DNA from: Podarcis muralis
Lineage: Eukaryota
DNA length: 64,000 bases
Assembly: GCF_964188315.1 (NCBI RefSeq)
Contig: NC_135659.1
Location: forward strand, 75,268,001 to 75,332,000
Direction: 5' to 3'
The notes beneath the pieces were generated by a model that saw only the letters and a list, made by a program, of their open reading frames with translations, had not been told where the DNA came from and did not search any database. This document shows positions 1,960 to 30,488 of this stretch, piece after piece. A program made the translations under genes and the position numbers. How positions within the stretch are numbered: position 1 is the first letter of the stretch; each line of letters starts with the position of its first letter.

Positions 1960-4881
1960 TCAGAGCACTCCTGACATATGGTTGTCAAGCCTCTGCTTAA
2001 AGACCTCCAAAGAAGGAGACTCCACCACACTCCTTGGCAGCAAATTCCACTGTCGAACAGCTCTTACTGTCAGGAAGTTCTTCCTAATGTTTAGGTGGAA
2101 TCTTCTTTCTTGTAGTTTGGATCCATTGCTCCGTGTCCGCTTCTCTGGAGCAGCAGAAAACAGCCTTTCTCCCTCCTCTATGTGACATCCTTTTATATAT
2201 TTGTACATGGCTATCATATCACCCCGTAACCTCCTCTTCTCCAGGCTAAACATGCCCAGCTCCCTTAGCCGTTCCTCATAAGGCATCGTTTCCAGGCCTT
2301 TGACCATTTTGGTTGCCCTCCTCTGGACACGTTCGAGTTTGTCAGTGTCCTTCTTGAACTGTGGTGCCCAGAACTGGACACAGTACTCCAGGTGAGGTCT
2401 GACCAGAGCAGAATACAGTGGCACTATTACTTCCCTTGATCTAGATGCTATACTCCTATTGATGAGGCCCAGAATTGCATTGGCTTTTTTAGCTGCCGCG
2501 TCACATTGTTGGCTCATGTCAAGTTTGTGGTCAACCAAGACTCCTAGATCCTTTTCACATGTACTGCTCTCAAGCCAGGTGTCCCCCATCTTGTATTTGT
2601 GCCTCTCATTTTTTTTGCCCAAGTGCAATACTTTACATTTCTCCCTGTTAAAATTCATCTTGTTTGTTTTGGCCCAGTTCTCTAATCTGTCAAGGTCGTT
2701 TTGAAGTGTGATCCTGTCCTCTGGGGTGTTAGTCACCCCTCCCAGTTTGGTGTCATCTGCAAATTTGATCAGGATGCCCTTGAGTCCATCATCCAAGTCG
2801 TTGATAAAGATGTTGAATAAGACCGGGCCCAAGACAGAACCCTGTGGCACCCCACTAGTCACTCTTCTCCAGGATGAAGAGGAACCATTGATGAACACCC
2901 TTTGGGTTCGGTCAGTCAGCCAGTTACAAATCCACTGAGTGGTAGCATAGTCAAGACCGCATTTTACCAGCTTCTTTACAAGAATATCATGGGGCACCTT
3001 GTCAAATGCCTTGCTGAAATCAAGGTAGACTACATCCACTGCGTTCCCTTCATCTACCAGGCTTGTAATTCTGTCAAAAAACGAGATCAGGTTAGTCTGA
3101 CATGACTTATTTTTCAGAAATCCATGCTGACTATTGGTGATCACAGCATTCCTTTCTAGGTGCTCACAGACTGTTTGCTTAATGATCTGCTCCAGAATCT
3201 TCCCTGGTATTGATGTCAGACTGACTGGGCGGTAATTATTTGGGTCCTCTCTTTTCCCCTTTTTGAAAATAGGGACAACATTTGCCCTCCTCCAGTCTGC
3301 GGGGACTTCGCCTGTTCTCCAGGAATTCTCAAAGATGACTGCCAGTGGTTCTGAAATCACATCTGCCAGTTCTTTTAATACTCTTGGATGCAGTTCATCT
3401 GGCCCTGGAGACTTGAATACATCTAGACTAGCCAAGTATTCTTGTACTGTCTCCTTAGTTATTCTGGGTTGTGTTTCCTCTGCTGAATCATTTGCTCCAA
3501 ATTCTTCAGGTCGGGCATTGTTTTCTTTATCGGAGAAGACTGAGGCAAAGAAAGCATTGAGGAGTTCAGCCCTTTCTGTGTCCCCTGTTTGCATTTCACC
3601 ATCTTCTCCTCTGAGTGACCCCACGGTTTCTTTGTTCTTCCTTTTGCTACGAACATACCCATAAAAGCCTTTTTTGTTGCTTTTAACCTCTCTAGCAAGC
3701 CTGAGTTCATTTTGTGCTTTAGCTTTTCTGACTTTGTGTCTACACGTGCTGGCTATTTGTTTGAATTCCTCTTTGGTGGTTTCCCCCCTTTTCCATTTTT
3801 TGTACACATCCTTTTTTAATCTTAACTCAGTTAAAAGTTCTTTAGATAGCCACCCTGGCTTCTTTAGGCACCTTCCATGTTTCCGTCTCATTGGTATTGC
3901 CTGAAGTTGTGCTTTTACTATCTCCCTCTTAACAAACTCCCAGCCATCTTGAACTCCCTTTCCTTTTAGTATTACTGTCCATGGGATCTCACCCAGCACT
4001 TCCCTAAGCTTTATGAAGTCGGCTTTCTTAAAGTCGAGAAATTGAGTCCTAGTATGCTTGGCTGCTCCTTTCCGCTGTATAGTAAACTTCAGAAGAGCAT
4101 GATCACTCGCGCCTAATGATCCTTCCACTTCTACCCCACTAACCAGGTCATCAACATTGGTTAGGACCAGATCTAAAATGGCTGTTCCTCTTGTTGCTTC
4201 TCCCACTTTCTGGACAATGAAGTTGTCTGCAAGGGCAGTGAGGAATCTGTTTGACCTTATGCTCTTGGCTGAGTTTGACATCCAACAAATATCAGGGTAA
4301 TTGAAGTCCCCCATTACTACTATCTCCCTTCCTTTTGCATGCTTGGCCATCTGTTCCAGGAAGGCATCATCTATGTCCTCCGTTTGGCTTGGGGATCTAT
4401 AGTAAACTCCCACAATGAGGTCACTGTTATTCTTCTCTCCCTTAATTTTCACCCAAATGCTCTCACTTTGGCTTTGAGGTTCTAAATCTTGGATCTCTTC
4501 ACAGGTATACACATCCCTGACATATAACGCCACTCCTCCTCCTTTCTTGTCTGGTCTGTTTCTTTGAAATAGATTGTATCCCTCCATTATTACATTCCAA
4601 TCGTGGGATTTATCCCACCAGGTTTCAGTGATTCCTATTATGTCATATTTAGTTTGCTGTACCAGGAGCTCAAGCTCATCTTGTTTATTTCCCATGCTTT
4701 GCGCATTAGTGTACAGACATTGAAGTCCATTAATCATTCCCCCGTGTCTCTTATTTAAGGATTTTTTCCTCCCACCACTAGGTCTGCATGCTCTTTGCTC
4801 CATTCGGTCTATGACATTTGGATGATCATCTTCATCAATTGATAGACTCCTACCTTCAGGAGCACTGTCTCCCTCCCCCAC
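1960..4881 (-). CDS. CR1 ORF2: apurinic-like endonuclease + reverse transcriptase
   Basis: 973 codons without a stop. EN motifs: [26 protein letters not shown] motifs: [42 protein letters not shown]. The track start is GTG and the first in-frame ATG is at about 4803, so the true start is uncertain. Confidence 0.96.
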
Positions 4882-4886
4882 ATTAG

Positions 4887-5921
4887 TCAGTTTAAAGCCC
4901 TCCTGATGAGGTTTCTGAGATTTTTTGCAAAAACATTCCTCCCAACCGTTGTGAGGTGCAGCCCACCGCTTGCCAGAAGTCCATCTTCAAGAAACTGCAT
5001 TCCGTGATCTAAGAATCCAAACCGTTCCTGTTTACACCATTTGCGAAGCCAGTTGTTCACTTCCACTATTTTTCCCTCTCTCCCTGGGCCACGTCGTTCA
5101 ACTGGGAGGACAGATGAGATGACAATTTGTGCATTTAATTGCTTCAATTTCCTGCCCAGAGCCTCGTAATCTCTTTTGATCTTCTGGAGACTATTGCTTG
5201 CAGTGTCATTGGTTCCCACATGAACCAAGAGGAAGGGGTATTTGTCAGTGGGTTTTATGATTCCTTGCAGTCGTTCAGTTACATCTTGGATCTTAGCCCC
5301 GGGGAGACAGCACACTTCCCGAGACATCTTGTCAGGCCCACAGATCACTGCTTCTGTTCCCCTCAGTAGGGAATCCCCTATCACCACCACACGCCTCCTC
5401 TTAGGTCTGGTCGGGGTTCTTCTGTGAGCTGTCCGTTCCAAGGTCGCCTGGACATTCCCTGAGGACTGCCTTTGCTGCTCGTCTTCATATACCTGATCGA
5501 CTGTAATGAGGGAGAGATCCTCAAATGGAGTCTGCTCTTCGTCTTCCATGGTAGGGGAAAGGACCTCAAAGCGATTGCGTATTTCTAAACAATCAAAGCG
5601 AACCCTGGGCCTCCTACTTCTTTGAGTCACGTTTCTCCATATATCTGGCTCCTGTGTTGGTGAACTAGCCACCTTCTCAGGGGAGTCCCCTGTCTCTTCC
5701 TTGGTGGAGACGGTGTGCTCTGTTGCTTCCAAGAAGAGTTCCAGGTCTCTAATTCTTTGGAGCGTAGCTACACGTTCCTCCAGTTGCTGGACTTTGTCTT
5801 TTAAGAGGGCAATCAACATGCAATTGCTGCAGGTAAAGCTGCCTGCAACCTTTGGCAAGATGGCAAACATTGCGCAGGAACCACAGGCGACTGCAGCTGT
5901 TCCCTCACCCTCCATCTTCAT
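4887..5921 (-). CDS. CR1 ORF1: Cx2C..Cx2C zinc finger, coiled coil, SGNH/GDSL esterase
   Basis: CGSC...CSNC, then the heptad segment [17 protein letters not shown]. Esterase blocks are VIGDSL, PGAKI, HVGTND and GGLH (normally DGLH). The start is taken at MKMEGEG (ATG 5921-5919), 344 aa. Confidence 0.92.
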
Positions 5922-6449
5922 CCTGCAGGGGGTGGATTGTGCTGGCTGATGAGAAATTAAGAGCCCCATTCCTTTGCTGGCTTCTCAAAAATGGTTCATT
6001 TCCTAATAGTGAAGTAAAACCTTGCAGTTATGAAATAGTGCCTTTGCCCGCAGGCATTTTCTTATTCTTGCTGTGGTGGCTGTGTGACAGTGCACTGCTA
6101 AGATGACATCTTTCAGTGTCCTGCTTCTATTATCTCATGCCCTGCCAATTTTCTAATTGTTAGTGGTTTTTATTTGTCATGCTTTTATTTCTTCATGCTC
6201 AACCCACACATGCAGCTGAAGCAGGAAATGAATGCTTCCTAGAATGAACATCCCAGTATCTCTCCAGCCTATTGTACACCTCTGATCTTCTCCCTTTAAT
6301 ATTGCCGAGGTTCTGAAGTGTCAAGCATTTGAAAGTAGACATTTGCAAAATATGCAGGTGGAATGCCATTTTCAAGCCTATCCATTGGTAGCTATCTCCA
6401 TAATCTGAATTTCAGCTACTTCAATCCATGTTACTATTCCCAATTTTTC

Positions 6450-9769: not shown

Positions 9770-9875
9770 ACTACACTGTCAAGTGTCTCTTACTGTCAAA
9801 AAGTTCTTCCTGATGTTTAGTCGGAATCTCCTTTCTTGTAACTTGAAGCCATTGGTTTGAATCCTGCTCTCTAGA
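9770..9875 (-). mobile_element. CR1 internal fragment, inverted relative to the preceding copy
   Basis: The reverse complement reads ttcaagttacaagaaaggagattccgactaaacatcaggaagaac, homologous to about 9525-9600. Confidence 0.85.
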
Positions 9876-10384
9876 AAGGGAGATGTGTTAAGTATAATTG
9901 GTTTAATTCACACTGAAATGATAATGCCTGTGTATTGGTAAAAAGGTTTAACACGGAGTGATTCCACTGAAGGTTTAGAAAAGCAAGAAGAGCTCTCTAA
10001 GCTTTTTGCAGGTTAATAATTCTCTAGCAGCAGCTAACACATGAGTGTTTAACCCTAGATCACATGTCAAAGGTATTTGGTTGCAAATCTCCATGTTTCA
10101 GGGAGTTGCCTTTGGTTCTTTGTTCTCCCCAACTCTGTGGAGTGAGGATGTAAATGAAGCTTTCCATGTAAACAGTTCCAGGGAAAATGGAGGCTGGAAT
10201 GGGGGAGAGACAGAGTTAAGGTCTCAATCCTGTTTAAAGATATTTCTAAGAAGATGCTGTGCTGGATATGCACAAGATTTGGCTGCATCATTTGCGTGTT
10301 GAGTCCCACAATTGCCACCCCCAAAAAATTCACACTTCACACATCAATTTTTGTTTAGGTTTTTGGCATAATTTTGGCCACAAC

Positions 10385-10390
10385 TTTATT
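10385..10390 (-). terminator. Putative polyadenylation signal of the YR element
   Basis: AATAAA within aataaagttgtggccaaa. The same motif is conserved at about 21026 (+) and about 29406 (-) in the related units. Confidence 0.6.
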
Positions 10391-10736
10391 CAAATACAAA
10401 ATGTGAGTGGTTGCTTAGGCATTGGTTATGACTATCTGTCCATGCCCTCAGGGACAGAGCTGGCATTCCGGACACCAGCGGAATCCAGTGTGGGAAACAA
10501 GTATTGGGTGAGAAAGTGAAGCTGGGTCTCAGTCCCGCACTTCTCACCCTCTTGTTCCTGTGGGGCTTGCACGGCCCAAGTCCGATTCCAGGGACAAGGA
10601 CGAAAAGAATGGCAAGCCCCTGGATTCCTTTAACGGAATTCCCTTCGCTCATTTGGAGGGGTAGGCACTTACCCCTCCAAGCACCATTTAACCAATGCCT
10701 AACCGCCATAGAGCCCACAGCTCACCGCCAAACCAC

Positions 10737-11324
10737 TCACAACCCCAGCCAAGCCCTAAGCTTGGCCACCACTGCACCCAACCAAACCTCATTCCCGGAG
10801 GCAGAAAGGTGCACACCATCGGCTCTAAAAAGGGATGCCGCCTGAAAATGAATCATTGGGTGCGAAATCACATCTCCACCCAATTCGGACATCTTTCTGG
10901 CTACCGCAGAATTGATGCGTTTCCTGGCCCTCTCCGTAGCTGCCGGGCAACGACTGCCCCTCCAAATGCGGCGGCGCAGCAGCTTGGACCAAAATATTTT
11001 TGCTGTTGGCATCCACGCCCGCAGCACCTCCAAGTCACTTAATATTGCAGCACGCAGAGAAAAACAGTCCGTGGATACCAGGTCATTCTCACCCAGCTGC
11101 ACCACTATAGCCGTGGGCTCCCCTTCCAGGAGCAATTGCCTCTGGATTCGCGGCAAGAACTCGGACCAGCGCATTCCCCGTCTGGCCAGCCACGACAGCT
11201 GCACATGTGGAGGGAAGCCAAGGCCTGGACCCCATCTGGACTGCTGTGCTGCGACGCCCGCCCAATGGATGATGCTGTGCCCCACCATCCAGATGCGGAC
11301 AGCCACTAGACCTGAAGTAAACAA
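10737..11324 (-). CDS. SGNH/GDSL-family hydrolase of the YR element
   Basis: Block I VGHS, block II RRG, block III LGEND and block V DGVH give a full Ser-Asp-His triad. The track start is TTG and the first ATG is only at MVGHS. Confidence 0.88.
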   Translation of the reverse strand: MFTSGLVAVRIWMVGHSIIHWAGVAAQQSRWGPGLGFPPHVQLSWLARRGMRWSEFLPRIQRQLLLEGEPTAIVVQLGENDLVSTDCFSLRAAILSDLEVLRAWMPTAKIFWSKLLRRRIWRGSRCPAATERARKRINSAVARKMSELGGDVISHPMIHFQAASLFRADGVHLSASGNEVWLGAVVAKLRAWLGL

Positions 11325-11350
11325 ATAAACAATGTGAGAATCCCATATAA

Positions 11351-12232
11351 TCAGCGGACATAACCACGAAACGCATCCGACTTCCAGCGGCCCAAATCCT
11401 TTATTCTAGCAGCCGACAAACCCCAATGAGCCGCTGTCGTTGCCGCCCCAATCCTGAAGGAATGAGGGGCATAACCATAGGCCGTGCCATCGCAAGCCAT
11501 AATCGCCTTTCGCATCACCTGCGCAAACTGGCGCCTTGTTAGGGGCAGCCCATTTTCATGTTTAAACAAAGGCCCATCGCCTGGGGGACGCACTGCTAAG
11601 TACTTGTTAACATCTTTTACAGGGCAAGGGCCTGCCCCCCCCGTAGCAGGGAGACGAATGACGGCACCCCTACCCTTTTGATCCGTCTTTGAATTCCTCA
11701 CTGTAATTATTAGCTCTGCAGGGAATAGCTGAAGGTCCCGGAGCAAAAGGCCCCTAGAACGACCATCCTTGAGATCTTCCAACACAAGCTCACCCACTCT
11801 CAATGCTCCGAAGAAGGCAATAGAGAAGGCAGCCGAAAACAGGCGAGCCTCATACCCTGACCAACAAACCACCCGCAGCCTCTTACGCATCCTGCTTAGC
11901 AAGTCAAAAGAAATTGGGTGCCGTGGGGCTGGCTGAGAAGGGCGAAGCCTACCCCAGCCGTCCAAAGCCTTGCGCACAACAAACTTCGAACAAGGGTCTC
12001 TATCAAAAAATGTCTCACAGAAAAATGCTATAGCAGCTGCCTGAATCCTAATGGTCTTAGCTGCACGCCCCAGCTGAAATAAGTGCGCCAGATAACTTAA
12101 CACCTGCGCAGAGGAGGGGGGGACGCCTTTTAATTCGCTGGCAGCCCGGCGCATGAACGCCAAAAAATCGGACCAGGCCTTTGTGTAGGATCTAAGAGTA
12201 GAAGGGGAAACAGATGCCGCTACTCCCTGCAA
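11351..12232 (-). CDS. Tyrosine recombinase (DIRS/Ngaro type)
   Basis: N-terminal SPSTLRSYTKAWSDF helix, then LRVGEL (R), SKTDQ (K), HSFR (HxxR), GRW and terminal RGY (Y). The track start is TTG. Confidence 0.95.
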   Translation of the reverse strand: MQGVAASVSPSTLRSYTKAWSDFLAFMRRAASELKGVPPSSAQVLSYLAHLFQLGRAAKTIRIQAAAIAFFCETFFDRDPCSKFVVRKALDGWGRLRPSQPAPRHPISFDLLSRMRKRLRVVCWSGYEARLFSAAFSIAFFGALRVGELVLEDLKDGRSRGLLLRDLQLFPAELIITVRNSKTDQKGRGAVIRLPATGGAGPCPVKDVNKYLAVRPPGDGPLFKHENGLPLTRRQFAQVMRKAIMACDGTAYGYAPHSFRIGAATTAAHWGLSAARIKDLGRWKSDAFRGYVR

Positions 12233-12234
12233 AA

Positions 12235-14199
12235 CTAATTGCTGCCAAGGTTCCAGAGATGATCCGGGAAATATTCCGGACGTATCCGAGCCTCTGGAAC
12301 CAGGAGTCTGAACCGCTCCATCTGAAAACGGGACAGAGCATCAGCAATTTCGTTAGTCACCCCGGGAATAAAACGTGCAGAAAACACTATATTATAACGC
12401 AAACAGTGCAATACGAAGGCTCTTAATAAGGCGGACACCCTGGGTGAACGTGACGACAACTTTGCCAGCACGGACACCACTGCCTGGTTATCAGTCCAGA
12501 AGCAGACACGACGGTTCCTGAATTCCTCGACCCACAAATGCACGGCCACTGCAATGGGAAAAAACTCGAGAAATGTTAGGTCCCGTGAAATCTCTCCTCC
12601 CTGCCAGGCGGGCGGCCAACGCTCAGCACACCATCGCCCTTTCCAGTAAAGACCAAAACCCAGGGAACCTGCAGCATCCGAATGGACCTGAAAATCATTG
12701 CGCAGGTTCAACGTGTCCCGCCATAATGAAACCCCATTGAATTCCTCCAGGAATTCCAACCATATGGAAAGATCCGACCTCACCTCACTAGAGAGGCGCA
12801 CTCGATGGTGAGGAGCCCTCAACCCCACAGTGAGACGCGCCAAGCGTGAACAGAAAGGGCGCCCAGGCGCCACCACTCTACACGCGAAATTCAGGTGCCC
12901 TAACAGGGATTGGATTTGTAACAAGGAAACTTTCCTCAAAGGAAGCAGTTCCTCTATGACCTTCTTCAAGGCTACTAGCTTGTCACGTGGTAAACTAGAA
13001 GTCTGGGAAACTGTATCCAACAGGATACCCAGGTAGGTAAGCTGGGTAGACGGACCTTCCGTCTTTTCCGCTGCCAGCGGAACCCCCAGCTCCTGGGTAA
13101 GGTCAGCAAATGCTTGCAGCAACACCGAGCAATCGCCAGTGTCGTGGGCTGAGGCCAATAAAAAATCATCCAAGTAATGAGTGACTCCGCCCAGCCCTGT
13201 TTTGGATTTAAGAGCCCACTCCAAAAAGGTGCTAAAAGATTCAAAAGCAGCACACGCTATTGAACATCCCATAGGCATGGCCTTGTCAAAATAGAATTTG
13301 CCCTCAAACTGAAAACCCAGTAGCCAAAAATCATCCGGATGAATCGGGAGGAGGCGAAATGCCGATTCAATATCACATTTCGCCAATAGGGCCGCGCGGC
13401 CAAACTTCCGAATCATCTTGATCGCCTGATCAAGAGATGCATACTTCACGGAGCAACGCTCCGGAGGTATAGCATCATTAACTGAGGTGCCCCTAGGATG
13501 TGACAAATTATGGATTAGACGAAATTCACCTGGGGCCTTCTTTGGCACGATACCCAATGGGGATACATGCAAATTATGAAAAGGAGGGGCATCGAAAGGA
13601 CCAGCCATCCGATGCATGGCCAGCTCCTTTGCGATCTTTTTACGGGCAACCTCAGGCAACTCCCGAACTGATTTTTGATTAGCTGGATTCCGTGCCACGG
13701 GTGGCATGGCTACCGGAATCCGAAAACCAACAGAAAAACCATCAATCAAATAGCCGGCAGCGTCCCTATCAGGATAAGATTGCAGCCAATGTTGTAGTGC
13801 CGGCAAACGAACAGGGGTATGAGCTAGGGAGAACAACACCTCATTTTCCTGTGCCTGATGTAGAAGCGAGAGAGGTGTTTTGCTTGGGGGGTTGCTGAGA
13901 ACCCCCTTTTCCCCCACGAAAGGGCCGCCGATACCCAAAACAAGAGGAGGCAGGATGCGAGCCATTGCATTTCTCACATATGTGAGCGTACCTGCAACCT
14001 TGACGCTGACAAGAGCCCTTATTAAACTCCCAGCAAGGTAAGCGACGGCTGGACCTAAAAGCCGTATTCTTCGGCTTCTGTTGCTCTGGCACCTTTTTAT
14101 CGATGAGTGGAGCAACATAGGTGGTCCACACATCGAGATCCTTGCGATCCCACCGAGCTGATGGGATCCTGGCGGCGCGACGCCTAAAGTGTTCATCAT
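12235..14199 (-). CDS. Reverse transcriptase + RNase H
   Basis: RT motifs: FRLIHNLS, KCDIESAFR, MPMGCS, YLDDFL. RH motifs: SDAAG, LEFFPI, TDNQAVV, ADALSR. The ORF ends about 30 aa after the last RH motif, so there is no methyltransferase. Confidence 0.96.
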   Translation of the reverse strand: MMNTLGVAPPGSHQLGGIARISMCGPPMLLHSSIKRCQSNRSRRIRLLGPAVAYLAGSLIRALVSVKVAGTLTYVRNAMARILPPLVLGIGGPFVGEKGVLSNPPSKTPLSLLHQAQENEVLFSLAHTPVRLPALQHWLQSYPDRDAAGYLIDGFSVGFRIPVAMPPVARNPANQKSVRELPEVARKKIAKELAMHRMAGPFDAPPFHNLHVSPLGIVPKKAPGEFRLIHNLSHPRGTSVNDAIPPERCSVKYASLDQAIKMIRKFGRAALLAKCDIESAFRLLPIHPDDFWLLGFQFEGKFYFDKAMPMGCSIACAAFESFSTFLEWALKSKTGLGGVTHYLDDFLLASAHDTGDCSVLLQAFADLTQELGVPLAAEKTEGPSTQLTYLGILLDTVSQTSSLPRDKLVALKKVIEELLPLRKVSLLQIQSLLGHLNFACRVVAPGRPFCSRLARLTVGLRAPHHRVRLSSEVRSDLSIWLEFLEEFNGVSLWRDTLNLRNDFQVHSDAAGSLGFGLYWKGRWCAERWPPAWQGGEISRDLTFLEFFPIAVAVHLWVEEFRNRRVCFWTDNQAVVSVLAKLSSRSPRVSALLRAFVLHCLRYNIVFSARFIPGVTNEIADALSRFQMERFRLLVPEARIRPEYFPDHLWNLGSN

Positions 14200-15364
14200 A
14201 TTTTATCGCCGCTTTTTCACCGGCTTTGGTAAAGGCGGAGCGAACAATAGATAAGTAAACCATCAAATGAAGAGATCTCCGCGGGTAAGCCGCCACCACC
14301 ACGCCAGCAAAGACCTGGAAACAATCGAGCCATATCTCGAAAGTCCTATCTGAAGGGGAAACACCCTGGCGTTTATTTGACGATTTCCCTTTTTCCTGGT
14401 CCTCCGAAGGAGGGGCCAGTTTGAAAATGTCTACATAACGGCCGTTCAGTATCCTAGAGCGCAGTTTTGACGACAAATGTGCACCTGGGATTATGTCCCT
14501 GGCGGAATTGGTAGATACTTTAACGTCAGGTACCAAAACGCCATCCTTACACTCTTGCACCGCTCCATACCTTGCCCGGTGGGTGTTGGCCCTACGATCC
14601 CAAGCCCACCGAGGCAGCCCCGTCGATTCCCCAAAGCCCCAATAAAGTTCCCGTGAGGCTCCCGTCTCATCGTCAGAACTAGAAGATGACATACCAGAAG
14701 AAGAGGAAGATGATTCGCCCCTCCTCCTCTTGGCACGCTTCCGGGAAGACCTCCTGCGGCGGCGCTTTCCACCCGAAGACTTCCTGGCAGGGACTGGCAG
14801 ACTATCCTCAATGGAAGACTCAGAGTCAGGGCTCAGGTGTGATGCACCTGGAACTGATGGAGGAGAAACAACAAGTGAGAGGCCGGAACCAGATGCCACC
14901 TCCACGGAATGTTGGGTGCGTCCACTACGGCGGGAGGAAGCTGCCAGAGGGCTTTTCTTTCCCGTGGCTCTCCCAGAGGAACGGCGTGGCCTTCGCGAAC
15001 GGCCGCGAACGGCAGGTAAGTCGCAGGGCTGGGAAGTCTGGGCATCAGACAGCAAACCCCTAGATGAAGAGCCTTCTCTCTCATCTTCACTAGACGATGG
15101 TGACGCAGGAGACGACGCCGCTACCGGACGAGGACGACTCCCAGACGTGGAAGGCTGGGCAGAGCATTGTTGAAGGAGACCATCCATTTCGGCTGCGAAA
15201 CGAGACAAAGCAACTGGGTTGCCGGCCATGCTTTCCACCAGAGACTGCACCCGGCCCACTGGTTGCCTCGGGGTGGGAGAACGAAGCGCCTGCGATGGAC
15301 CTCTAATAGGCCGTTTTGCAGCGGAAGCCAGGCCGGGGCGGGCAGTGACTTTCTTGGGAGCCAT
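13841..15364 (-). CDS. Gag-like protein (Ser/Arg-rich, C-terminal CCCH + CCHC zinc fingers)
   Basis: 507 aa starting at ATG. Contains CWEFNKGSCQRQGCRYAH followed by CEKCNGSHPASSC, and overlaps the RT ORF by 359 nt. Confidence 0.9.
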   Translation of the reverse strand: MAPKKVTARPGLASAAKRPIRGPSQALRSPTPRQPVGRVQSLVESMAGNPVALSRFAAEMDGLLQQCSAQPSTSGSRPRPVAASSPASPSSSEDEREGSSSRGLLSDAQTSQPCDLPAVRGRSRRPRRSSGRATGKKSPLAASSRRSGRTQHSVEVASGSGLSLVVSPPSVPGASHLSPDSESSIEDSLPVPARKSSGGKRRRRRSSRKRAKRRRGESSSSSSGMSSSSSDDETGASRELYWGFGESTGLPRWAWDRRANTHRARYGAVQECKDGVLVPDVKVSTNSARDIIPGAHLSSKLRSRILNGRYVDIFKLAPPSEDQEKGKSSNKRQGVSPSDRTFEIWLDCFQVFAGVVVAAYPRRSLHLMVYLSIVRSAFTKAGEKAAIKYDEHFRRRAARIPSARWDRKDLDVWTTYVAPLIDKKVPEQQKPKNTAFRSSRRLPCWEFNKGSCQRQGCRYAHICEKCNGSHPASSCFGYRRPFRGGKGGSQQPPKQNTSLASTSGTGK

Positions 15365-15420
15365 ACCTGCTACTTGAAATCAAACAGAGAATAAACGGTT
15401 GCTATAGTCGAAGAAACAAA

Positions 15421-15462
15421 CCTATCTATCTATCTATCTATCTGTCTGTCACAATTTAATAT

Positions 15463-15493
<31 letters not shown>

Positions 15494-15540
15494 TATTTTT
15501 AATTGAGATTTATATTATTTATTTTATTATTTATTTGCCT
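15421..15540. repeat. (CTAT)n and (ATTT)n microsatellites inside the YR element leader
   Basis: Direct reading of the tandem tetramers. Confidence 0.9.
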
Positions 15541-16703
15541 TCCAGAGCCTGAGTCTGAAATTAAAAGGAGTGCACTTGCTCCCCTCAACCAGCAGGGGGC
15601 ACCTGATAACCCTTAAGCTCAGTTAGGGAAGACGCAACCTTGCCCTGAGCCACCAGGGGGAGCTCCCAACAGATCTCCCGGCTGCAGTGACACCGCTCGG
15701 CCACAAGGTGGAGCCGTCGGACGAACTGGCTGCAGCTACAAGGAAATCTCCTCGCGCAGAGAGCGCTATTGGGCCCCTTACACCAAAATGTCGGGCGCAA
15801 GCGCGGGCCGCCGCTCCCGATCCCCGGCGAGCGGCCCCGCCGCCTCTCGCCGGAAGGGAAGGAGGGGGAAGCCGGGCGACCGTTAGGCCAAGCCCTGGAC
15901 GCCGCTAGGCCGGCTCGCGGATACAGCCGCAGTCCGGCCTGATTCCCCCACAAAATCCGGCCGCTCGCGCCCTCACCGCCGGCACCAGCGACGAGCGGCG
16001 GAAAAGCCTCTCCCGCACCTCCGGGGGCAATTAATCGGGGAACCGTCCCCCCCCCCCACAGCGGATGCCGCCGCAGGCCTGGGGAGAGGCCAAGGAACCG
16101 CACCGTCCCTTCTCAATCCCCGGCGGCCGCGAGCAGGTAAGGGGCAAGCTTAATTTTTTAAACGGAAAAACAGGGGAAAGAGGAAAAAAAAAAAGGAAAG
16201 AAAAGGGGGGGAGGGGGCCTTAAGGCAGCGGGACTTCAAGGCCCGAGCAGGCCTACCGTGCGCACCAGCCACGAGCTCCCAGCCGCGGCACCGGGGACGA
16301 GCGCCCTCAAAAAAGGGGGGGGGGGTGCCTAAGCAGCAGCCGCGGCGGCAGCCGGCAGCGAGCGACCCAAAAATTAATAAAAGGCCAGGTACCTAGCCCA
16401 AAGGCAGGTACCCGGAAGGCCGGGGGGGGGGGGACCCACCCTCAGGCCTATGGCTGTAGTCCACTCAATTTAAGTTAAGTAAAGGTAAAAGGATAAGAAA
16501 ATCAGTAGGGAGAGGATCAGGAAGAATGGGGCGATGGGAGGAAAAAACGCTAGAAGAAGGTAAGGGAGAGAGAGGAGGACAAAATCAAACGAGGCCAGGG
16601 AGTGACGAGGGAAAATTAGGAATTTGGGTAGGCCCAAGGAAAGCGAAAGTGAAAGGTGAATACAACCGTCTCCAGCAGCTCCTGATCCGATGCAAAAACG
16701 GCC

Positions 16704-16740
16704 AAGAGGAAGTCCAACCTCTGGCCCCCTGTATTTATAA
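16704..16740 (-). promoter_or_regulatory. Putative TATA box and initiator of the YR element
   Basis: Minus strand TTATAAATAC (16740-16731), then ACTTCCTCTT (16713-16704) about 26 nt later. CTTCCTCTT...GCATCGGAT is conserved in the 20315 unit. Confidence 0.6.
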
Positions 16741-18311
16741 CCTCTAACCCCTCCCAAATTCTCCTCACACGAAAAATCCCCGGCAACCCAATTTTAACCC
16801 CTTAGGAGGCTTGGGTTTACCAAATCTGCCTAATCACGGTCAGGTGGCTTGTTTCCCCCAACCGCAACACGTGCTCTCTGTTAAGGAGAACACGCTTTAC
16901 TGTTTATTTTAAAGAAAGTTCTGCAAAGTAAGCTTGGAATAATATTTTCATGGGTCTGGGCAATCTTCATTCCAAAAGGGCTCAGTTTTTATGCATCCAG
17001 TTACTTCATGCTGCACAATATTAATATCTGCAGAAAGTTGAAAGTCATCTTAATTCTGCCTGGTAAAGTTGGCACAGAAGTTGTTCTCTTAATATATAAA
17101 CAGCAGCATGACACTCAGAAGGTGCATTGCATGGAGTTCCATGCATGGAGTTCCACTTCAGTGAAGTGGGTGATTCAAATGGCATTTGCATAGACATAAT
17201 TCCATGTGCATATTTTTTTTTTAGAATATAGGGTGCAGCAACATGCTGGACTGCTTTCAGGATGAAACAAAAATGGTTCTATCTCCCTATGAATTAAAGG
17301 GAGAAGGTCAGATTAATAAATTCAAGCTGTTGCTTCCTGTCTTCAAATGGTTTTTGAACTCTATTTTTTTTTTTTTTTTTTTGCCAATCACCTTTTGCCA
17401 AAGGAGAGGCAGAGTTATTCCAGGAGGGTAACCTGAGTTATTATCAGAGTCTCCTTTTTCTTGTCTTGCTCCTGGTGCTGTGGCTCCCAATGTGAAGGGC
17501 AAAAATAAGAATAAAAAAAATACGGAGGATGCCTTTTATATGCCCTACATTAGCAAAAACACCAGATTGAGAGGATCAGAAATGGAAACTGCATTTCTCT
17601 TTTGAAAAGGTAGAGCGCTGATAGCATCTGTTTATCCTTCCCACGCTTCCGAACTCCTGCTGGGAGCTGCAGACTTCATCTAAGAAGACTGTACAGAAGA
17701 TTGCATACTTGATGATATACATGTGGGCAAAAAATGCTGACTATCTCCTCCAGAAACCCTCTATCCCTGAATGGCTCTAGATTAATTCTGGCATTATCAA
17801 GTTTGTTCATTTGTAGGCAAAATAGGATGGGTGATGCCTGCTGTGAGCCTCAACTTTCAAATAAGAGGAAGATATTGGATTGCACACTTGATGATATGGC
17901 TGTGGACCCAAACTCTGAAAATCTCCTTGTCAAATGTTTATAGCTTTGAATGATTATGGAGCATTGCTGCTATTATCAAAGCCCAGGCATTTTTAACAGA
18001 AAACAGGATTTCTAAGTCCCTGCTGTTTTCAGCTAAAGGAGAATATTTATTGCATTTTTATCCCACCCTCCATCCAACCAACCAACCAACCAACCTGTAA
18101 TGTCCCAAGGGAAGATACCAGGTTGCACTTTTGATGCACAGGTTGCCAAATCATAGAATAGCCCCTTTGTGATTCTGCATCCATCTATGTCTAAGAAATG
18201 CTAGTCATCTTGTTTTGGGGTACAATAGAATCTGATAGCATTTCATTTAAGAAGAATAGGATCTTTTGCTAGATTTGAAGCCAAATAGTTATTCCTAAAG
18301 TTATACCAAAT

Positions 18312-18767
18312 AGTAGTAGTAGTAGTAGTAGTAGTAGTAATAATAATAATAATAATTTATTATTTATACCCCGCCCATCTGGCTGGGTTTCCCCAGCCAC
18401 TCTGGGTGGCTTCCAACTGAATATTAAAAACAGTACAGCATCAAACATTAAAAACTTCCCTAAAGAGGGCTGCCTTCAGATGACTTTTAAAAGTAAAATA
18501 GTTGTTTATTGCTTTGACATCTGCTGGGAGGGCATTCCACAGGGCAGGCGCCACTACCGAGAAGGCCCTCTGCCTGGTTCCCTGTAACCTTACTTCTCAC
18601 AATGAGGGAACCGCCAGAAGGCCCTCGGCGCTGGATCTCAGTGTCCGGGCTGAACGATGGGGGTGGAGACGCTCCTTCAGGTATACTGGACCGAGGCCGT
18701 TTAGGGCTTTAAAGGTCAGCACCAACACTTTGAATTGTGCTCGGAAACGTACTGGGAGCCAATGCAC
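18312..18767 (-). mobile_element. L2-type LINE 3' fragment
   Basis: The minus strand translates HWLPVRFRAQFKVLVLTFKALNGLGPVYL...RAFSVVAPALWNALP, a typical L2 ORF2 C-terminus, and ends in a (TAA)n/(TAG)n tail. Confidence 0.9.
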
Positions 18768-18944
18768 ATCTCTCAGAACTGTTTATGCCAAACAGATAAT
18801 AGCTATAAAACTTTGAGCTGATCTAGGACTTTAATCTAGTGGTTTCAGTTACAGGTCTAGAGCACTGGTCACTGGATGCTATGCACACACAAAGACAGTG
18901 TGTGCTGTTTTGAAACCATAACATCAGCAAGACACATCAGCATC

Positions 18945-19047
18945 CCCTGTTCAATTCCCATCATCCCTGACCACTGGTCCTGTTAGCTAGGGATGATGGG
19001 AGTTGTAGTCCCAAAACATCTGGAAGGCCGAGTTTAGGGATGCCTGC
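18945..19047. mobile_element. Partial hAT MITE (6747 family)
   Basis: Carries aattcccatcatccctgaccactgg...gggagttgtagtcccaaaacatctgga and the right TIR only. Confidence 0.75.
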
Positions 19048-19137
19048 TCTAGAACTCACTGGATTCTAGGGAGCAGGCATTTGAGAACCAAGGTACCACT
19101 GTGTGTGTGTGTGTACATACACAGAGAGAGCAAGAGA

Positions 19138-19481
19138 NNNNNNNNNNNNNNNNNNNNNNNNNNNNNNNNNNNNNNNNNNNNNNNNNNNNNNNNNNNNNNN
19201 NNNNNNNNNNNNNNNNNNNNNNNNNNNNNNNNNNNNNNNNNNNNNNNNNNNNNNNNNNNNNNNNNNNNNNNNNNNNNNNNNNNNNNNNNNNNNNNNNNNN
19301 NNNNNNNNNNNNNNNNNNNNNNNNNNNNNNNNNNNNNNNNNNNNNNNNNNNNNNNNNNNNNNNNNNNNNNNNNNNNNNNNNNNNNNNNNNNNNNNNNNNN
19401 NNNNNNNNNNNNNNNNNNNNNNNNNNNNNNNNNNNNNNNNNNNNNNNNNNNNNNNNNNNNNNNNNNNNNNNNNNNNNNNNN
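19138..19481. other. Assembly gap (344 N)
   Basis: Run of n. Confidence 1.
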
Positions 19482-20314
19482 CTGCTAAACCTTTCTTTGG
19501 TGTCCAAAGCATACTGAGCATTGCACGAAACATAAAAGTGCTGTGTGATTCCTGTCTGTTTTGGAAAGAAGAAGAGAACAGAGGGAATGAGAATAGGAGA
19601 GGAATAAAGAAAGCAATATGACAGATGGTCAAGGAGAGGATTAAGTGGTAAGAGAGGGAACGAAACAAACTATGGAGGTGCAGCTGTAATAAGTTAGCTT
19701 TGAAATGGAGCATAAAGATAGAGAGCAGGCTTTATCCACATGTGCCGGCGGTGTGGCTATTGGAGGCAGAGGGAGCAGTATGGCAGAGGTACAGTGGCAG
19801 GACAGGAACAAAAGAGGTCAATCGCAGATGAACAAAGGTGGCAAGTAGCAGGTGCGCTGTCCCAATTTATTTTGGCTGCACTGCTAGGGAATATCACTGA
19901 GAAGCAGAATGCTGCAGAGCTATTGTTGTTCCAAAGGATGGTGTGTTCCAGGTATCCTGCTGGAAGCCATAACCCTGTGTGAAAGTCATTCATCATGTGT
20001 CGCCCTCTTTTATCATGGTGTCAAGGACTGGCCCACTTGCTCAGTGGTGTGCAGGATGGTCATCTTGACTTCAAGCAGGAATCCTGAAGGGAACCATGGG
20101 GGGGGGGGTGATATTGTGAAGCTGATGGCGAGCAAGTGGAAATGTCTATAATAAAGTATTTCTGTTACAGTTACAATCCTCTCCCCTTCTTGGTGCAGAA
20201 ACAGAACTAGGTGCATTTTCATACAGCAGACCCAATTTCCTGCCATCTTTTTTACTATGTAGAACCTGTTTAGTGCTTAGAGTTCCCCCTCATCTTGTAG
20301 GTTTTCTTTACAAA

Positions 20315-21120
20315 GCGTGTTCTCCTTCATGGAGAGCACGTGTTGCAGTGGGGGCCGACAGGACACTCCAAAGTTGTGGGGCGGGCTAATGGATCGTTAG
20401 CCACTGATGCGATTGGGCTTCCCTTGTTGGGAAGAAGTTAATGTTGCCATTTGTTGATTGACAGCCAGAAATGCTAAAACTCCCTGCAAGAGGCATAGAG
20501 CTTCCTCTTTTCACCCCGTGCATCGGATTGCCCGCCCTCCCTATATTTAGGGTTGTTCACTTTGACCTTGCTATGCCTGTCATGGGGTCATCTGCTCTTG
20601 GGGCAGGGGCCCGGTAGGAATTTTGTCCATCTGGCTGATTGGCTGGGGCCATTTGGTTTTTTCCTACTGCATAGCAAATCATCACAACTTGTAAGGTTGC
20701 GGTTAAGCATTGTTTTATGGTTTGGTTGGTTGAGGGGCATGGAATGGCTGTGCCTGCCCCTCTAATGCTGCTGCTGCAAGGGATTCCGTTAAGGGAATAC
20801 AGGGGCTCACTATTGCTTTTGTGCACCCTGTCAAGGGGCTCAGGCCATGCAAGAGCCCCTGGTTGCATTTGGGAAGGGCTGAGGGCAGCTTCCCTGCTCC
20901 GTCGCTACCCCCAAGTGTATTCCCCTTTCTTACTTTTGCAGGTGTGCGGAATGTCAGTCTGTCCCCCACTGGGGGGCAGATAGTCACAATCAATGCCTAA
21001 GCAACCACTCACATTTTTGAATTTTAATAAAGTTGTGGCCAAAATTATGCCAAAAACCTTAAACAAAAATTTATGTGTGATGCGTGAGTTATTGGGGTGG
21101 CCCTGGGGACCTCGACACGC
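20315..21120 (+). mobile_element. ORF-less 806-bp YR-element unit (solo A-B repeat or non-autonomous derivative)
   Basis: The first ~35 nt match the 5' end of the big element. The last ~430 nt are homologous to its 3' end, about 85% by eye over the terminal 150 nt. Flanks are AAA and AA. Confidence 0.88.
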
Positions 21121-21295
21121 AATCAGAGGAGACATGTAGCATCTCCCCTTCTTGATTTGGAGGTGCAGCAATAGATTTCACCAAGAAAAGTATACAGGAC
21201 ACATTTAAAGCCCGCTGTTAGATCCATTTGTGATTCAATTGCAAAAAAAGAAAAAAGAAAAGAGAGAGAGCATTTACTGTGTTTATTGTTTTTTT

Positions 21296-21587
21296 TTTTT
21301 GTTGTTGTTGTTTAGTTGTTTAGTCGTGTCCGACTCTTCGTGACCCCATGGACCAGAGCACGCCAGGCACCTCTGTCCTCCACTACCTCCCGCAGTTTGG
21401 TCAAACTCATGCTGGTAACATCGAAAACACTATCCAACCATCTCGTCCTCTGTCTCCCCCTTCTCCTTGTGCCCTCCATCTTTCCCAGCATCAGTGTCTT
21501 CTCCAGGGAGTCTTCTCTTCTCATGAGGTGGCCAAAGTACTGGAGCCTCAGCTTCACGATCTGTCCTTCCAGTGAGCACTCAGAGCA
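21296..21587 (-). mobile_element. RTE-BovB LINE 3' fragment
   Basis: Translates LRLQYFGHLMRREDSLEKTLMLGKMEGTRRRGRQRTRWLD and has a (CAA)n tail. Confidence 0.92.
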
Positions 21588-29125: not shown

Positions 29126-29309
29126 ATATAGTTTGTCCACTTACATTTCTTGCTCCTAGTTCTGGCCCATCACAGTTGACTTCTTGCGCAAAGACTAAGA
29201 TGAAGCAAGAAAACAAGGAGACTACCTCTTGTCCTACTGTACACTGCAAACCTACAGGGGGCATTTAAAGTATGTTGCATTGAAATGCATCTTAATAGGG
29301 AGTTGCTTT

Positions 29310-30488
29310 ATGTGACCAGGCGGCAACTGCCCCAGCCCCCAGGGACCACCAGAAATGAATAATGACTCATGACAGCATGTTATGGAATTAAAATTTGGCC
29401 ACAACTTTATTAAACTCTCAAATGTAGGAAGACCTTGGGTTTGGCATTGGGCGTGTATCCCTCCCAGCCCTGCAGCCAGGGGAACTGGGGCTCATCAGGG
29501 TAAATGGGATATGGGGGTGCTCTGCAAGATGTATGTGTATGCAGGCAGCTCACCCCATATCCCCTCACGCAGAGTAGTTCACTGATGTCAGCAAAGCTCA
29601 GATGCTGACAGGAGGAGAAGAAGCAGGCATAGGGAGAGGACAGTTAGCAGCAGAAAGCAGAGAGGAGGGGCAGAGCAGCTGTCATCTGAGCTCTGAACAA
29701 AGGGACAGACAGCTGTGTGAGAGCTCCAATAGTGAGACAGACGTTGGAATGCAGGAAACATTCTCTCCCAAATCTAGCAGGATTTCAAAAGTGGCAAAGA
29801 GAAGAGAAGGTGGGGCTTCCATGCTGGGGAAAGGGGAGGAGCTCAGTCCAGGCAACTCCATCTTCTGGGGAGGACGATGAGTAGAGGAGCTCTGTCCTAG
29901 TTTGTTGTTTTAGCAATAAATCTGAAATAATTACCAGCCAGAGTCGTCTCACATTTGTGAGAGAGACCAAGCCGTAACAACTGACCACCTTTCAGTGTAT
30001 GGTCAGTGACACCCATATTACCACCCTTTTAAGAGGGGACCCTGGAATCACTGCTGTGGGGGGGGGAGGGGGGAGTCACCACTTCACGTCTCCCTCTCCA
30101 TTATAGGGAAGAAAAGACTAAAGGATTCCATGCAAGGCCTTAAACTGCCAAAGTTGTGACGAATTGCTGTGGGGAAGACAAAACCTGCCAATGCAGGAAA
30201 ATTTCTTCCCGGCTCTTCAACAGCAACCAGTCGAAAGACTCTAGCAGTGCCCGCTAAACAGGAAAAAAAAGTTTAACCTGTAAACAAGAAAGGAGGTTTG
30301 GAGGGTGAAGCTCCTGAGCCGACCTGCCTGGCTACTGCTGGCTCCACCCCCTATTTATGCGACTGGCCCACCTCCCAGCAATGTAACTTGACTACTGAGG
30401 CTGGGCGTGAGCCTCCAAGGAATAACACTGAGAGGCAGGCCAGCCCACACAAACTGGTAAGTTCCCTGAGGTCCGAAGCATGTCACAC
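29310..30488 (-). mobile_element. Diverged ORF-less YR-element-like unit, interrupted by a solo LTR
   Basis: The minus strand has ccaatgccaa...acattt...ttaataaagttgtggccaaatt, shared with the 3' end of the big element. It has a TATA-like CATAAATAGG and termini GTGTGAC/GTCACAT. Confidence 0.6.
29586..29979 (+). mobile_element. Solo LTR (probably Gypsy-type)
   Basis: TGTCA...TAACA termini, a perfect 5-bp TSD actga (29581-85, 29980-84), and AATAAA at 29915-20. Confidence 0.85.

Follow-up and report, generated by a model that had tools for sequence, protein, structure and literature searches.

Structured RNA lies at the poly(A) signal in the R regions of retroviruses, as in the Rex-responsive element (RexRE) of human T-cell leukaemia virus 1 and bovine leukaemia virus (HTLV-1/BLV) and the poly(A) hairpin of human immunodeficiency virus 1 (HIV-1), and stem-loops of the R2 and UnaL2 type are 3' untranslated region (UTR) structures that are recognised by the reverse transcriptases (RTs) of non-long-terminal-repeat (non-LTR) retrotransposons. 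Among tyrosine recombinase (YR) retrotransposons, DIRS-1 has an internal complementary region (ICR) defined by complementarity to both termini. Ngaro elements carry split direct repeats around their open reading frames (ORFs) in the order A1-ORFs-B1-A2-B2 (Goodwin and Poulter 2004, in the summaries given by PMC9210276 and PMC7192593). Here we describe a Ngaro-type element in a 64,000-nt stretch of the Podarcis muralis genome (contig NC_135659.1, positions 75,268,001 to 75,332,000 of the forward strand; this whole stretch is hereafter the window, and its numbering is used throughout). In the reading that we favour, it belongs to a squamate Ngaro-type family, and its whole 3' UTR is the ~330-nt folded core of the B split direct repeat and probably works as a cis-acting 3'-end RNA platform. 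The observation itself is real and far beyond chance, and the domain is very likely a selected structure of the sense RNA.

Like described Ngaro elements, the window element encodes a gag-like protein, RT/RNase H (RT/RH), a YR and an SGNH/GDSL hydrolase, and its relatives hold the A and B repeats in canonical order; unlike them, the window copy is a one-unit A-ORFs-B form. RT/RH and YR ORFs without a DDE integrase place it in the Ngaro/DIRS order, the hydrolase ORF follows the YR ORF as in vertebrate Ngaro elements, and the four ORFs are the same as the vertebrate Ngaro coding set (PMC9210276). The element and its parts are as follows.

10292-16898, minus strand: Ngaro-type YR retrotransposon in the one-unit form A-gag-RT/RH-YR-hydrolase-B, without A2-X-B2 (Pfam matches, end matches, alignment to the relatives L001, L009 and L010 listed below)
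13841-15364, minus strand: gag-like ORF
12235-14199, minus strand: RT/RNase H ORF (RVT_1, E 3.6e-13)
11351-12232, minus strand: YR ORF (Phage_int_SAM_4 and Phage_integrase, both weak matches)
10737-11324, minus strand: GDSL/SGNH hydrolase ORF (Lipase_GDSL_2, E 4e-5, below Pfam's own cut-off)
10292-10708, minus strand: B repeat (B1), with the structured core, AATAAA, a GT-rich downstream element and the terminus ...ACACGCAA; doubled at 100% identity in L001, L009 and L010
10385-10390, minus strand: AAUAAA poly(A) signal within the invariant AAUAAAGUUGUGGCC, with a GU-rich element ~40 nt downstream (motif scan, sequence comparison)
20312-21122, plus strand: ORF-less A-X-B unit of a diverged subfamily, laid out as the terminal A2-X-B2 of seven relatives (L001, L009, L010, L012, L013, L015, L016)

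The region 10403-10740 is the 3' UTR of the element, running on the minus strand from the hydrolase stop codon TGA (10739-10737) to AATAAA (10390-10385). The YR ORF has 1178 lizard homologues, which are named xerD-like, and the hydrolase ORF was found in 10 loci by tblastn. The ends of the element match those of the ORF-less unit, whose first 43 nt are common with the 5' end of the element and whose last 190 nt are common with its 3' end; between these ends the unit aligns across the whole 3' domain.

We selected relatives through homologues of the YR protein, and all of them are squamates (Lacertidae, a gecko and an anole).

L001, L009, L010: Podarcis muralis, YR protein identity to the window ORF 77-88%, 3' domain DNA 88-94%
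L011, L014: P. muralis, other subfamilies, YR protein identity 56-59%
L012: Lacerta agilis, YR protein identity 58%
L013: Zootoca vivipara, YR protein identity 52%
L015: Eublepharis macularius (gecko), YR protein identity 47%
L016: Anolis sagrei (anole), YR protein identity 39%

The whole window element aligns to L001, L009 and L010. By self-comparison, these three elements together with L012, L013, L015 and L016 have the order A1-ORFs-B1-A2-X-B2, in which both repeat pairs are 99.5-100% identical (A, 216-283 nt; B, 297-428 nt), and their B repeat spans the bases equivalent to window 10708 (start) to 10292 (end). The domain is thus duplicated as B1 and B2 in close and distant relatives, and the 3' UTR fold is therefore the core of the B split direct repeat. 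The window element itself stops after B1, so the order A1...B1-A2-B2 is not present in this copy, and one contig from a run of Podarcis muralis fuses the end of B directly to the start of A. These comparisons show that the one-unit and ORF-less forms of the window belong to an ordinary split-direct-repeat family, with no new terminal architecture. Most Logan contigs with YR or hydrolase genes end before the UTR.

The suggestion that the fold possibly replaces the ICR is not supported in view of the canonical Ngaro repeats in relatives both close (with a 3' domain 88-94% identical) and distant: the domain is the B repeat, and the expected analogue of the ICR is the B1-A2 junction. The B domain resembles the DIRS-1 ICR in that both are non-coding, lie close to the 3' end of their YR retroelement and are regions thought to be needed to rebuild the ends. 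However, it has none of the complementarity to the termini that defines the ICR: no inverted repeat joins the termini to 10403-10740, the termini are not inverted repeats of each other, and the part in question is played by the B1-A2 junction.

Several features accompany these repeats. Both window insertions (A-ORFs-B and A-X-B) begin with AAAGCG and terminate with CACGCAA, and relatives hold both units in tandem (cf. L001:11604-12415). At the B|A junction AAA is enclosed by a 7-bp inverted repeat (AACACGC-AAA-GCGTGTT), and resolution by the recombinase at this site could have produced the one-unit forms. The A repeats contain CCAAT boxes and a TATA-like box ~30-50 nt before their 3' end (window 20540-20560 and 16730-16745; also L012, L013, L015 and L016), so that every unit, including the ORF-less one, looks like its own transcription unit ending at the B signal. 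A UGGCGG direct repeat flanks a small hairpin on both sides at window 10705-10735, and the B1/B2 identity starts exactly at its second copy. At the X-B junction UGGCGG occurs once only. This arrangement looks like a trace left either by a template switch or by deletion between short repeats.

The domain in the window element, read as minus-strand RNA, consists of the following helices.

10731-10741, minus strand: P1 5' arm, UGUGAGUGGUU, holding the hydrolase stop UGA 10739-10737 (minimum free energy, MFE, folds; seen in all lineages by arm-to-arm comparison)
10402-10412, minus strand: P1 3' arm, AACCACUCACA (MFE folds; cognate-arm test)
10705-10728, minus strand: P1a, a small hairpin between UGGCGG direct repeats, in the hydrolase-B1 context only; closing pair C-G, G-C or U.U
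10689-10704, minus strand: P2 5' arm, GGUUAGGCAUUGGUUA (inverted-repeat search, alignments)
10413-10428, minus strand: P2 3' arm, UAACCAAUGCCUAAGC; U-A becomes C-G in L009, and the inner extension has four Watson-Crick types (columns 69/387)
10653-10680, minus strand: P3 hairpin of 11 bp (10653-63/10670-80), loop AGUGCC; 6/11 pairs with double-sided changes
10622-10642, minus strand: P4 hairpin, GGAATTCC/GGAATCC stem, with a conserved GUUAAA hexaloop at 10629-10634
10562-10620, minus strand: P5, 9 bp (10562-70/10612-20), around P5a and P5b; 11/17 pairs with double-sided changes (helices 3-5)
10494-10558, minus strand: P6 and P6a, a long, lineage-variable hairpin (stem 10506-24/10530-49); G-C to A-U compensations in the group of the window element (columns 225-228/246-249)
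10460-10488, minus strand: P7 hairpin; A-U becomes C-G between the window element and L009/L010 (columns 281/300)
10429-10458, minus strand: P8, the last hairpin, CUGUCC/GGACAG (10435-10458), then conserved single-stranded AUAGUC; U-A becomes C-G in L009 (columns 307/330)

Every stem of the original prediction is present in the sequence, as found by an inverted-repeat search and MFE folding, and its coordinates for the stems hold; its plus-strand reading does not, as both the element and the RNA are on the minus strand. For the minus-strand RNA 10395-10745 the MFE is -163.6 kcal/mol, compared with -121.6 +/- 6.0 in dinucleotide shuffles (z-score -7.0; 0/100 as good). The predicted closing helix across the hydrolase stop codon is found as an 11-bp pairing of 10731-10741 with 10402-10412 that contains the TGA, and the P2 arms include 14 nt at 100% complementarity. 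The apparent 26-nt interruption of the closing helix turns out to be a hairpin, the small and conserved P1a (10705-10728), which is absent at the X-B2 junctions of relatives. For P4, the MFE fold of the window copy prefers a competing pairing, and the comparative data favour P4. No third pairing partner for the invariant P2 arms was found elsewhere in the element.

The second window unit contains a homologous folded domain.

20689-21014, plus strand: homologous folded domain of the ORF-less unit, with P1'/P2' (20689-20718 with 20986-21014), P3' (20732-20762), P4' (20783-20798), P5' (20800-20861) and P8' (20952-20986)

As had been proposed, this second copy (c2; the window element copy is c1) keeps equivalent stems. 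The region 20685-21025 aligns end to end, and both named compensatory pairs are present (T-A to C-G, in P3 and P5). The two copies are indeed diverged, and their relative orientation had to be corrected: the second is inverted relative to the first. The fold of the ORF-less unit is weaker (z -2.6, and -2.8 in the comparison of full domains across lineages), and its closing helix has two A.C mismatches. A partial copy at L012:3771-4026 in Lacerta agilis is 78% identical to this unit and is matched by the covariance model described below (E 6e-11); the subfamily of the ORF-less unit is thus common to Podarcis and Lacerta.

Unconstrained MFE folds of 11 sequences from eight lineages share a common plan, which includes P0/P1, P1a, P2, P3, P4 with its GUUAAA loop, P5 with inner stems, P6/P7 and P8. 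The 5' arm of P0/P1 is formed by the last hydrolase codons and the stop, and its 3' arm lies just before AAUAAA. The full domain has z-scores from -4.1 to -7.8 in seven full-length lineages, compared with -1.0 to -4.7 for the inner region alone; much of the signal resides in the closing stems, and some inner hairpins are modestly stable.

We compared the closing arms without an alignment by taking from each domain its first 88 nt and its last 62 nt, set by position only, and calculating interaction energies for all lineage combinations. Cognate arms average -32.6 kcal/mol and non-cognate arms -19.0, and the true pairing outdoes every other one of the 40,320 permutations of eight lineages, which supports co-evolution of the two sides of the closing stems. 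The P2 arms change together, with UUAGGCAUUGGUUA in the window copy, ...CACUGG... in L009, ...GAGUG... in L012, GGGUCAGAUCCC in the gecko and GGGCCCUGGAUC in the anole. P0 contains a pair series from A-U through G.U to G-C across L012, L011 and L014, and P1 has matched two-base indels in both arms.

For the inner helices P3-P5, a covariance model (R1) was built from the c1 group and c2 alone, and 0.44 Mb was searched with it. The model locates P3-P5 at the right place in L012, L011, L014 and L013 (E 4e-5 to 3e-3). In the gecko its best match is on the wrong strand and in the anole the match is not significant, so P3-P5 in these two species rest on their own folds only. In the resulting P3-P5 alignment 90.3% of the cells are paired, compared with 80.1 +/- 1.0 in shuffles, and double-sided changes occur in 19/35 pairs, compared with 6.8 +/- 1.8 (0/500 shuffles as high in either case). 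When the partners were slid by 1-3 columns, only 29-56% were paired, with 3-6 double-sided pairs.

RNAalifold applied to a MAFFT-only alignment of the 11 sequences recovered P2, P3 and parts of P1a, P4 and P5a, including one P2 pair with four Watson-Crick types. This alignment does not register P1 across lineages, due to the indels in both arms, and the arm-to-arm and cognate tests were used for P1 instead. A structure-aware progressive alignment was good for the lacertids and misplaced the anole sequence. Among the 88-94% identical group and c2 alone, 15 predicted pairs have compensated changes. Thus, the selected, cis-linked structure that had been proposed from two window copies is borne out in eight lineages from three lizard families, over which compensatory changes extend. 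An Rfam 15 search of window 9800-21500 gave only a chance match to a small RNA (E 0.38), none of the six relatives' loci had a match at gathering score, and a pattern scan of metagenomes returned two chance matches in bacterial coding sequence.

The folding strand was assessed from mismatches flanked by Watson-Crick pairs, with both transition mismatch types scored equally. Within the helices of the seven full-length lineages, 13 mismatches are of the G.U type and 2 of the A.C type (p 0.007), an excess that identifies the folded strand as the sense strand. The ORF-less window unit has 1 G.U-type and 3 A.C-type mismatches, as expected of a decaying copy. RNA-seq reads from two bulk runs and one single-cell run with the same species label cover 10300-10710, with the first mate mostly on the plus strand, which in usual stranded libraries corresponds to minus-strand (sense) RNA. 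Of the two forms that had been considered, RNA and single-stranded DNA, this orientation and the bias of 13 to 2 support the former and disfavour the minus-strand complementary DNA (cDNA).

At a likeness of at least 90%, RNA-seq depth is ~5-20 on B and almost none on the hydrolase ORF, and it drops after ~10360. Reads that cross out of B at 10708 run into the X end and not into the hydrolase ORF, which places most of the expressed B copies in the X-B context. The contigs of one run have a depth of ~393 over B, 167 over the hydrolase and 125 over the B-to-A junction (window 10150-11400). One contig variant jumps 10391-10619 and thereby lacks the greater part of the inner domain together with the 3' closing arms.

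The AATAAA signal and the outer stems are linked, a connection that the original prediction had overlooked. B holds a full polyadenylation unit, with the invariant AATAAAGTTGTGGCC and a GT-rich element ~40 nt further on. In the B1 context P0 is the outermost stem, and its 3' arm stops 0-3 nt before AAUAAA in six of the seven lineages; in the group of the window element the gap is 11 nt, over a U-rich spacer that is able to form G.U pairs. A second outer helix is available in the X-B context.

20676-20685, plus strand: X end, AUCACAACUU, complementary to AAGUUGUGGC at 21030-21039, which lies directly after and overlaps AAUAAA 21026-21031

The X end GUCACAACUU sits at the position of P1a in the X-B context of lacertids, gecko and anole, and the motif occurs once per element with the GTCACAAC context, at the end of X. 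Its helix with AAGUUGUGGC covers the last 2-5 bases of AAUAAA and is present in the MFE folds of 7/8 A-X-B units, with pair probabilities of 0.8-1.0. Both GUCACAACUU and AAGUUGUGGC are invariant in lacertids, gecko (L015:12269-12278 region) and anole (L016:11900 region). Due to this invariance there is no covariation, and a sequence-specific role is indistinguishable from pairing. The two B copies of one element differ in cis only by their upstream context; thus, any differential use of the signal, as the split-repeat model needs, would have to be encoded there.

Structure that abuts or includes AAUAAA in a twice-present terminal repeat is also characteristic of RexRE and the poly(A) hairpin. 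The likeness extends to a large multi-hairpin domain in such a repeat, so that signal use must differ by context. However, the B domain lies between the stop codon and AAUAAA, and theirs lie between AAUAAA and the cleavage site, and the B domain is not similar to them in sequence. With the R2 and UnaL2 structures it shares a conserved, covarying 3'-terminal RNA structure that is retained by ORF-less derivatives, but it is much larger and belongs to a YR element with a gag-like ORF, not to target-primed reverse transcription. The retroviral R-region and non-LTR 3' UTR structures are the nearest analogues by way of working, and neither is homologous. In the searchable literature, which covers few subscription journals and so gives no proof of novelty, Ngaro repeats are described as nothing more than repeats, and we found no report of a conserved RNA fold, a poly(A) unit or alternative closing helices in Ngaro repeats.

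In the favoured reading, the UTR folds as sense RNA into a closed multi-branch domain in which P0/P1, P2 and P1a form a three-way junction, with five or six hairpins and the conserved single-stranded GUUAAA and AUAGUC inside. The closing stem is made with whatever lies upstream, that is, the last hydrolase codons and the stop in B1, and in terminal or solo A-X-B units the X end GUCACAACUU, pairing with AAGUUGUGGC over part of AAUAAA. These alternative closing helices would set the presentation of the poly(A) signal in the two repeat contexts, and the conserved hairpins would be bound by proteins of the element or the host that choose this RNA as the one to be copied. A role connected with 3'-end formation is a serious possibility, and a role in RT/Gag recognition, packaging or strand transfer, with which it is compatible, is possible to a slightly lesser degree. 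It can further be speculated, with considerable doubt, that the B repeat is an RNA switch with two alternative outer helices, whose context decides between cleavage and read-through: the ORF-end helix would be opened by the translating ribosome, and the X-end helix would pair over AAUAAA. Such a switch, if true, would decide between mRNA and a full-length template for rebuilding the split direct repeats, the missing step of Ngaro replication.

Several observations weigh against this platform reading. Only 11 distinct sequences were compared, and the P3-P5 alignment was fitted to the structure of the model, which favours pairing. The inner region is barely above shuffles in three lineages (z -1.0 to -2.0), the form of P6 and P7 is not conserved, and P2 is invariant in lacertids, so that sequence rather than pairing could be conserved there, although gecko and anole differ in both arms. 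Among the reads listed for the RNA-seq runs none has a poly(A) tail. Finally, the simplest replication model requires B1 to be read through and B2 to be cleaved, yet part of the hexamer is paired in the terminal X-B context, which is at odds with that model.

The alternative that survives best, somewhat unlikely as a full account, is that the domain is mainly the element's own site for RT/Gag recognition, packaging or priming, or a device for strand transfer between B2 and B1, and that AAUAAA lies near only because the UTR is compactly packed. Such a site would be well served by a large platform of many hairpins with covarying stems and the conserved loops GUUAAA and AUAGUC, as would its retention in ORF-less A-X-B units, including the diverged subfamily in the window and in Lacerta agilis; the equality of B1 and B2 within each element, with identity from UGGCGG beside P1a, fits copying from one template. 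However, this alternative comes without a primer-binding site or tRNA complementarity, the A-X-B units may be no mobilised non-autonomous elements but solo remnants, and the invariant AAUAAA-overlapping helix of the X-B context is left unexplained.

It is improbable that the domain is a post-transcriptional element serving RNA stability, nuclear export or evasion of nonsense-mediated decay. Here the folded-out UTR would put the terminating ribosome by the poly(A) tail or shield the 3' end, in line with a closing stem that brings the stop codon within a few nt of AAUAAA and with the excess of B RNA (depth ~5-20) over the hydrolase ORF (almost none). Many A-X-B copies can account for this excess, however, and the domain is retained in the X-B context, where no ORF ends; moreover, no U-rich double internal loop of the type found in expression and nuclear retention elements (ENEs) was seen. 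Still less probable is a structure in single-stranded cDNA used for recombination or circle formation, by analogy with the folded attC or CTX phage sites of tyrosine recombinases. The element encodes a YR, P1 and P2 are nearly all Watson-Crick and could be formed by either strand, and DIRS-1 is reported to amplify via linear single-stranded cDNA (PMC7192593), but the mismatch bias of 13 to 2 fits the sense strand and not the minus-strand cDNA, and the B|A junction (AACACGC-AAA-GCGTGTT) already provides a palindrome of the typical recombinase-like kind. That the domain has no function, being chance or DNA-level palindromes in a GC-rich repeat that look conserved through kinship of the copies, is already disfavoured and has a negligible probability: the window copies are related, one 14-nt inverted repeat per 6.8 kb is not rare by chance and the inner-region z is weak in some lineages, but both arms co-change between lineages with YR proteins only 39-59% identical, and strand-asymmetric wobbles are unexpected of DNA palindromes.

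Three further candidates were rejected. A coding explanation, based on a 110-codon GTG-start frame in B, is ruled out by single-base indels between close copies. A tRNA primer site at UGGCGGUUAGG has no T-arm-like complement (compared by eye only), and an ENE-type triple-helix clamp lacks a paired U-rich loop.

Elsewhere in the window, the minus strand of 29300-29500 holds a further AATAAAGTTGTGGCC with CCAATGCCAAACCC before it, which is probably a degraded fragment of a B repeat. The minus strand of 1960-5969 holds a long interspersed nuclear element with an ORF for an apurinic-type endonuclease and RT (973 aa) and an upstream ORF (360 aa) with a GDSL-esterase/OSK-like domain, and is thus a second, unrelated esterase-carrying retroelement.

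Essentially nothing is known of how YR retrotransposons prime reverse transcription, select the RNA that serves as template and restore their repeats, and Ngaro elements have seen no bench work. The ~330-nt domain, whose architecture has been maintained by compensating changes in an anole, a gecko and Lacertidae, marks a place of selection on the RNA of these elements. It is a candidate for a new RNA family, could help to annotate Ngaro B repeats and solo units, and offers a concrete target for experiments. The fold thus gives a testable handle on how Ngaro elements finish and copy their RNA.

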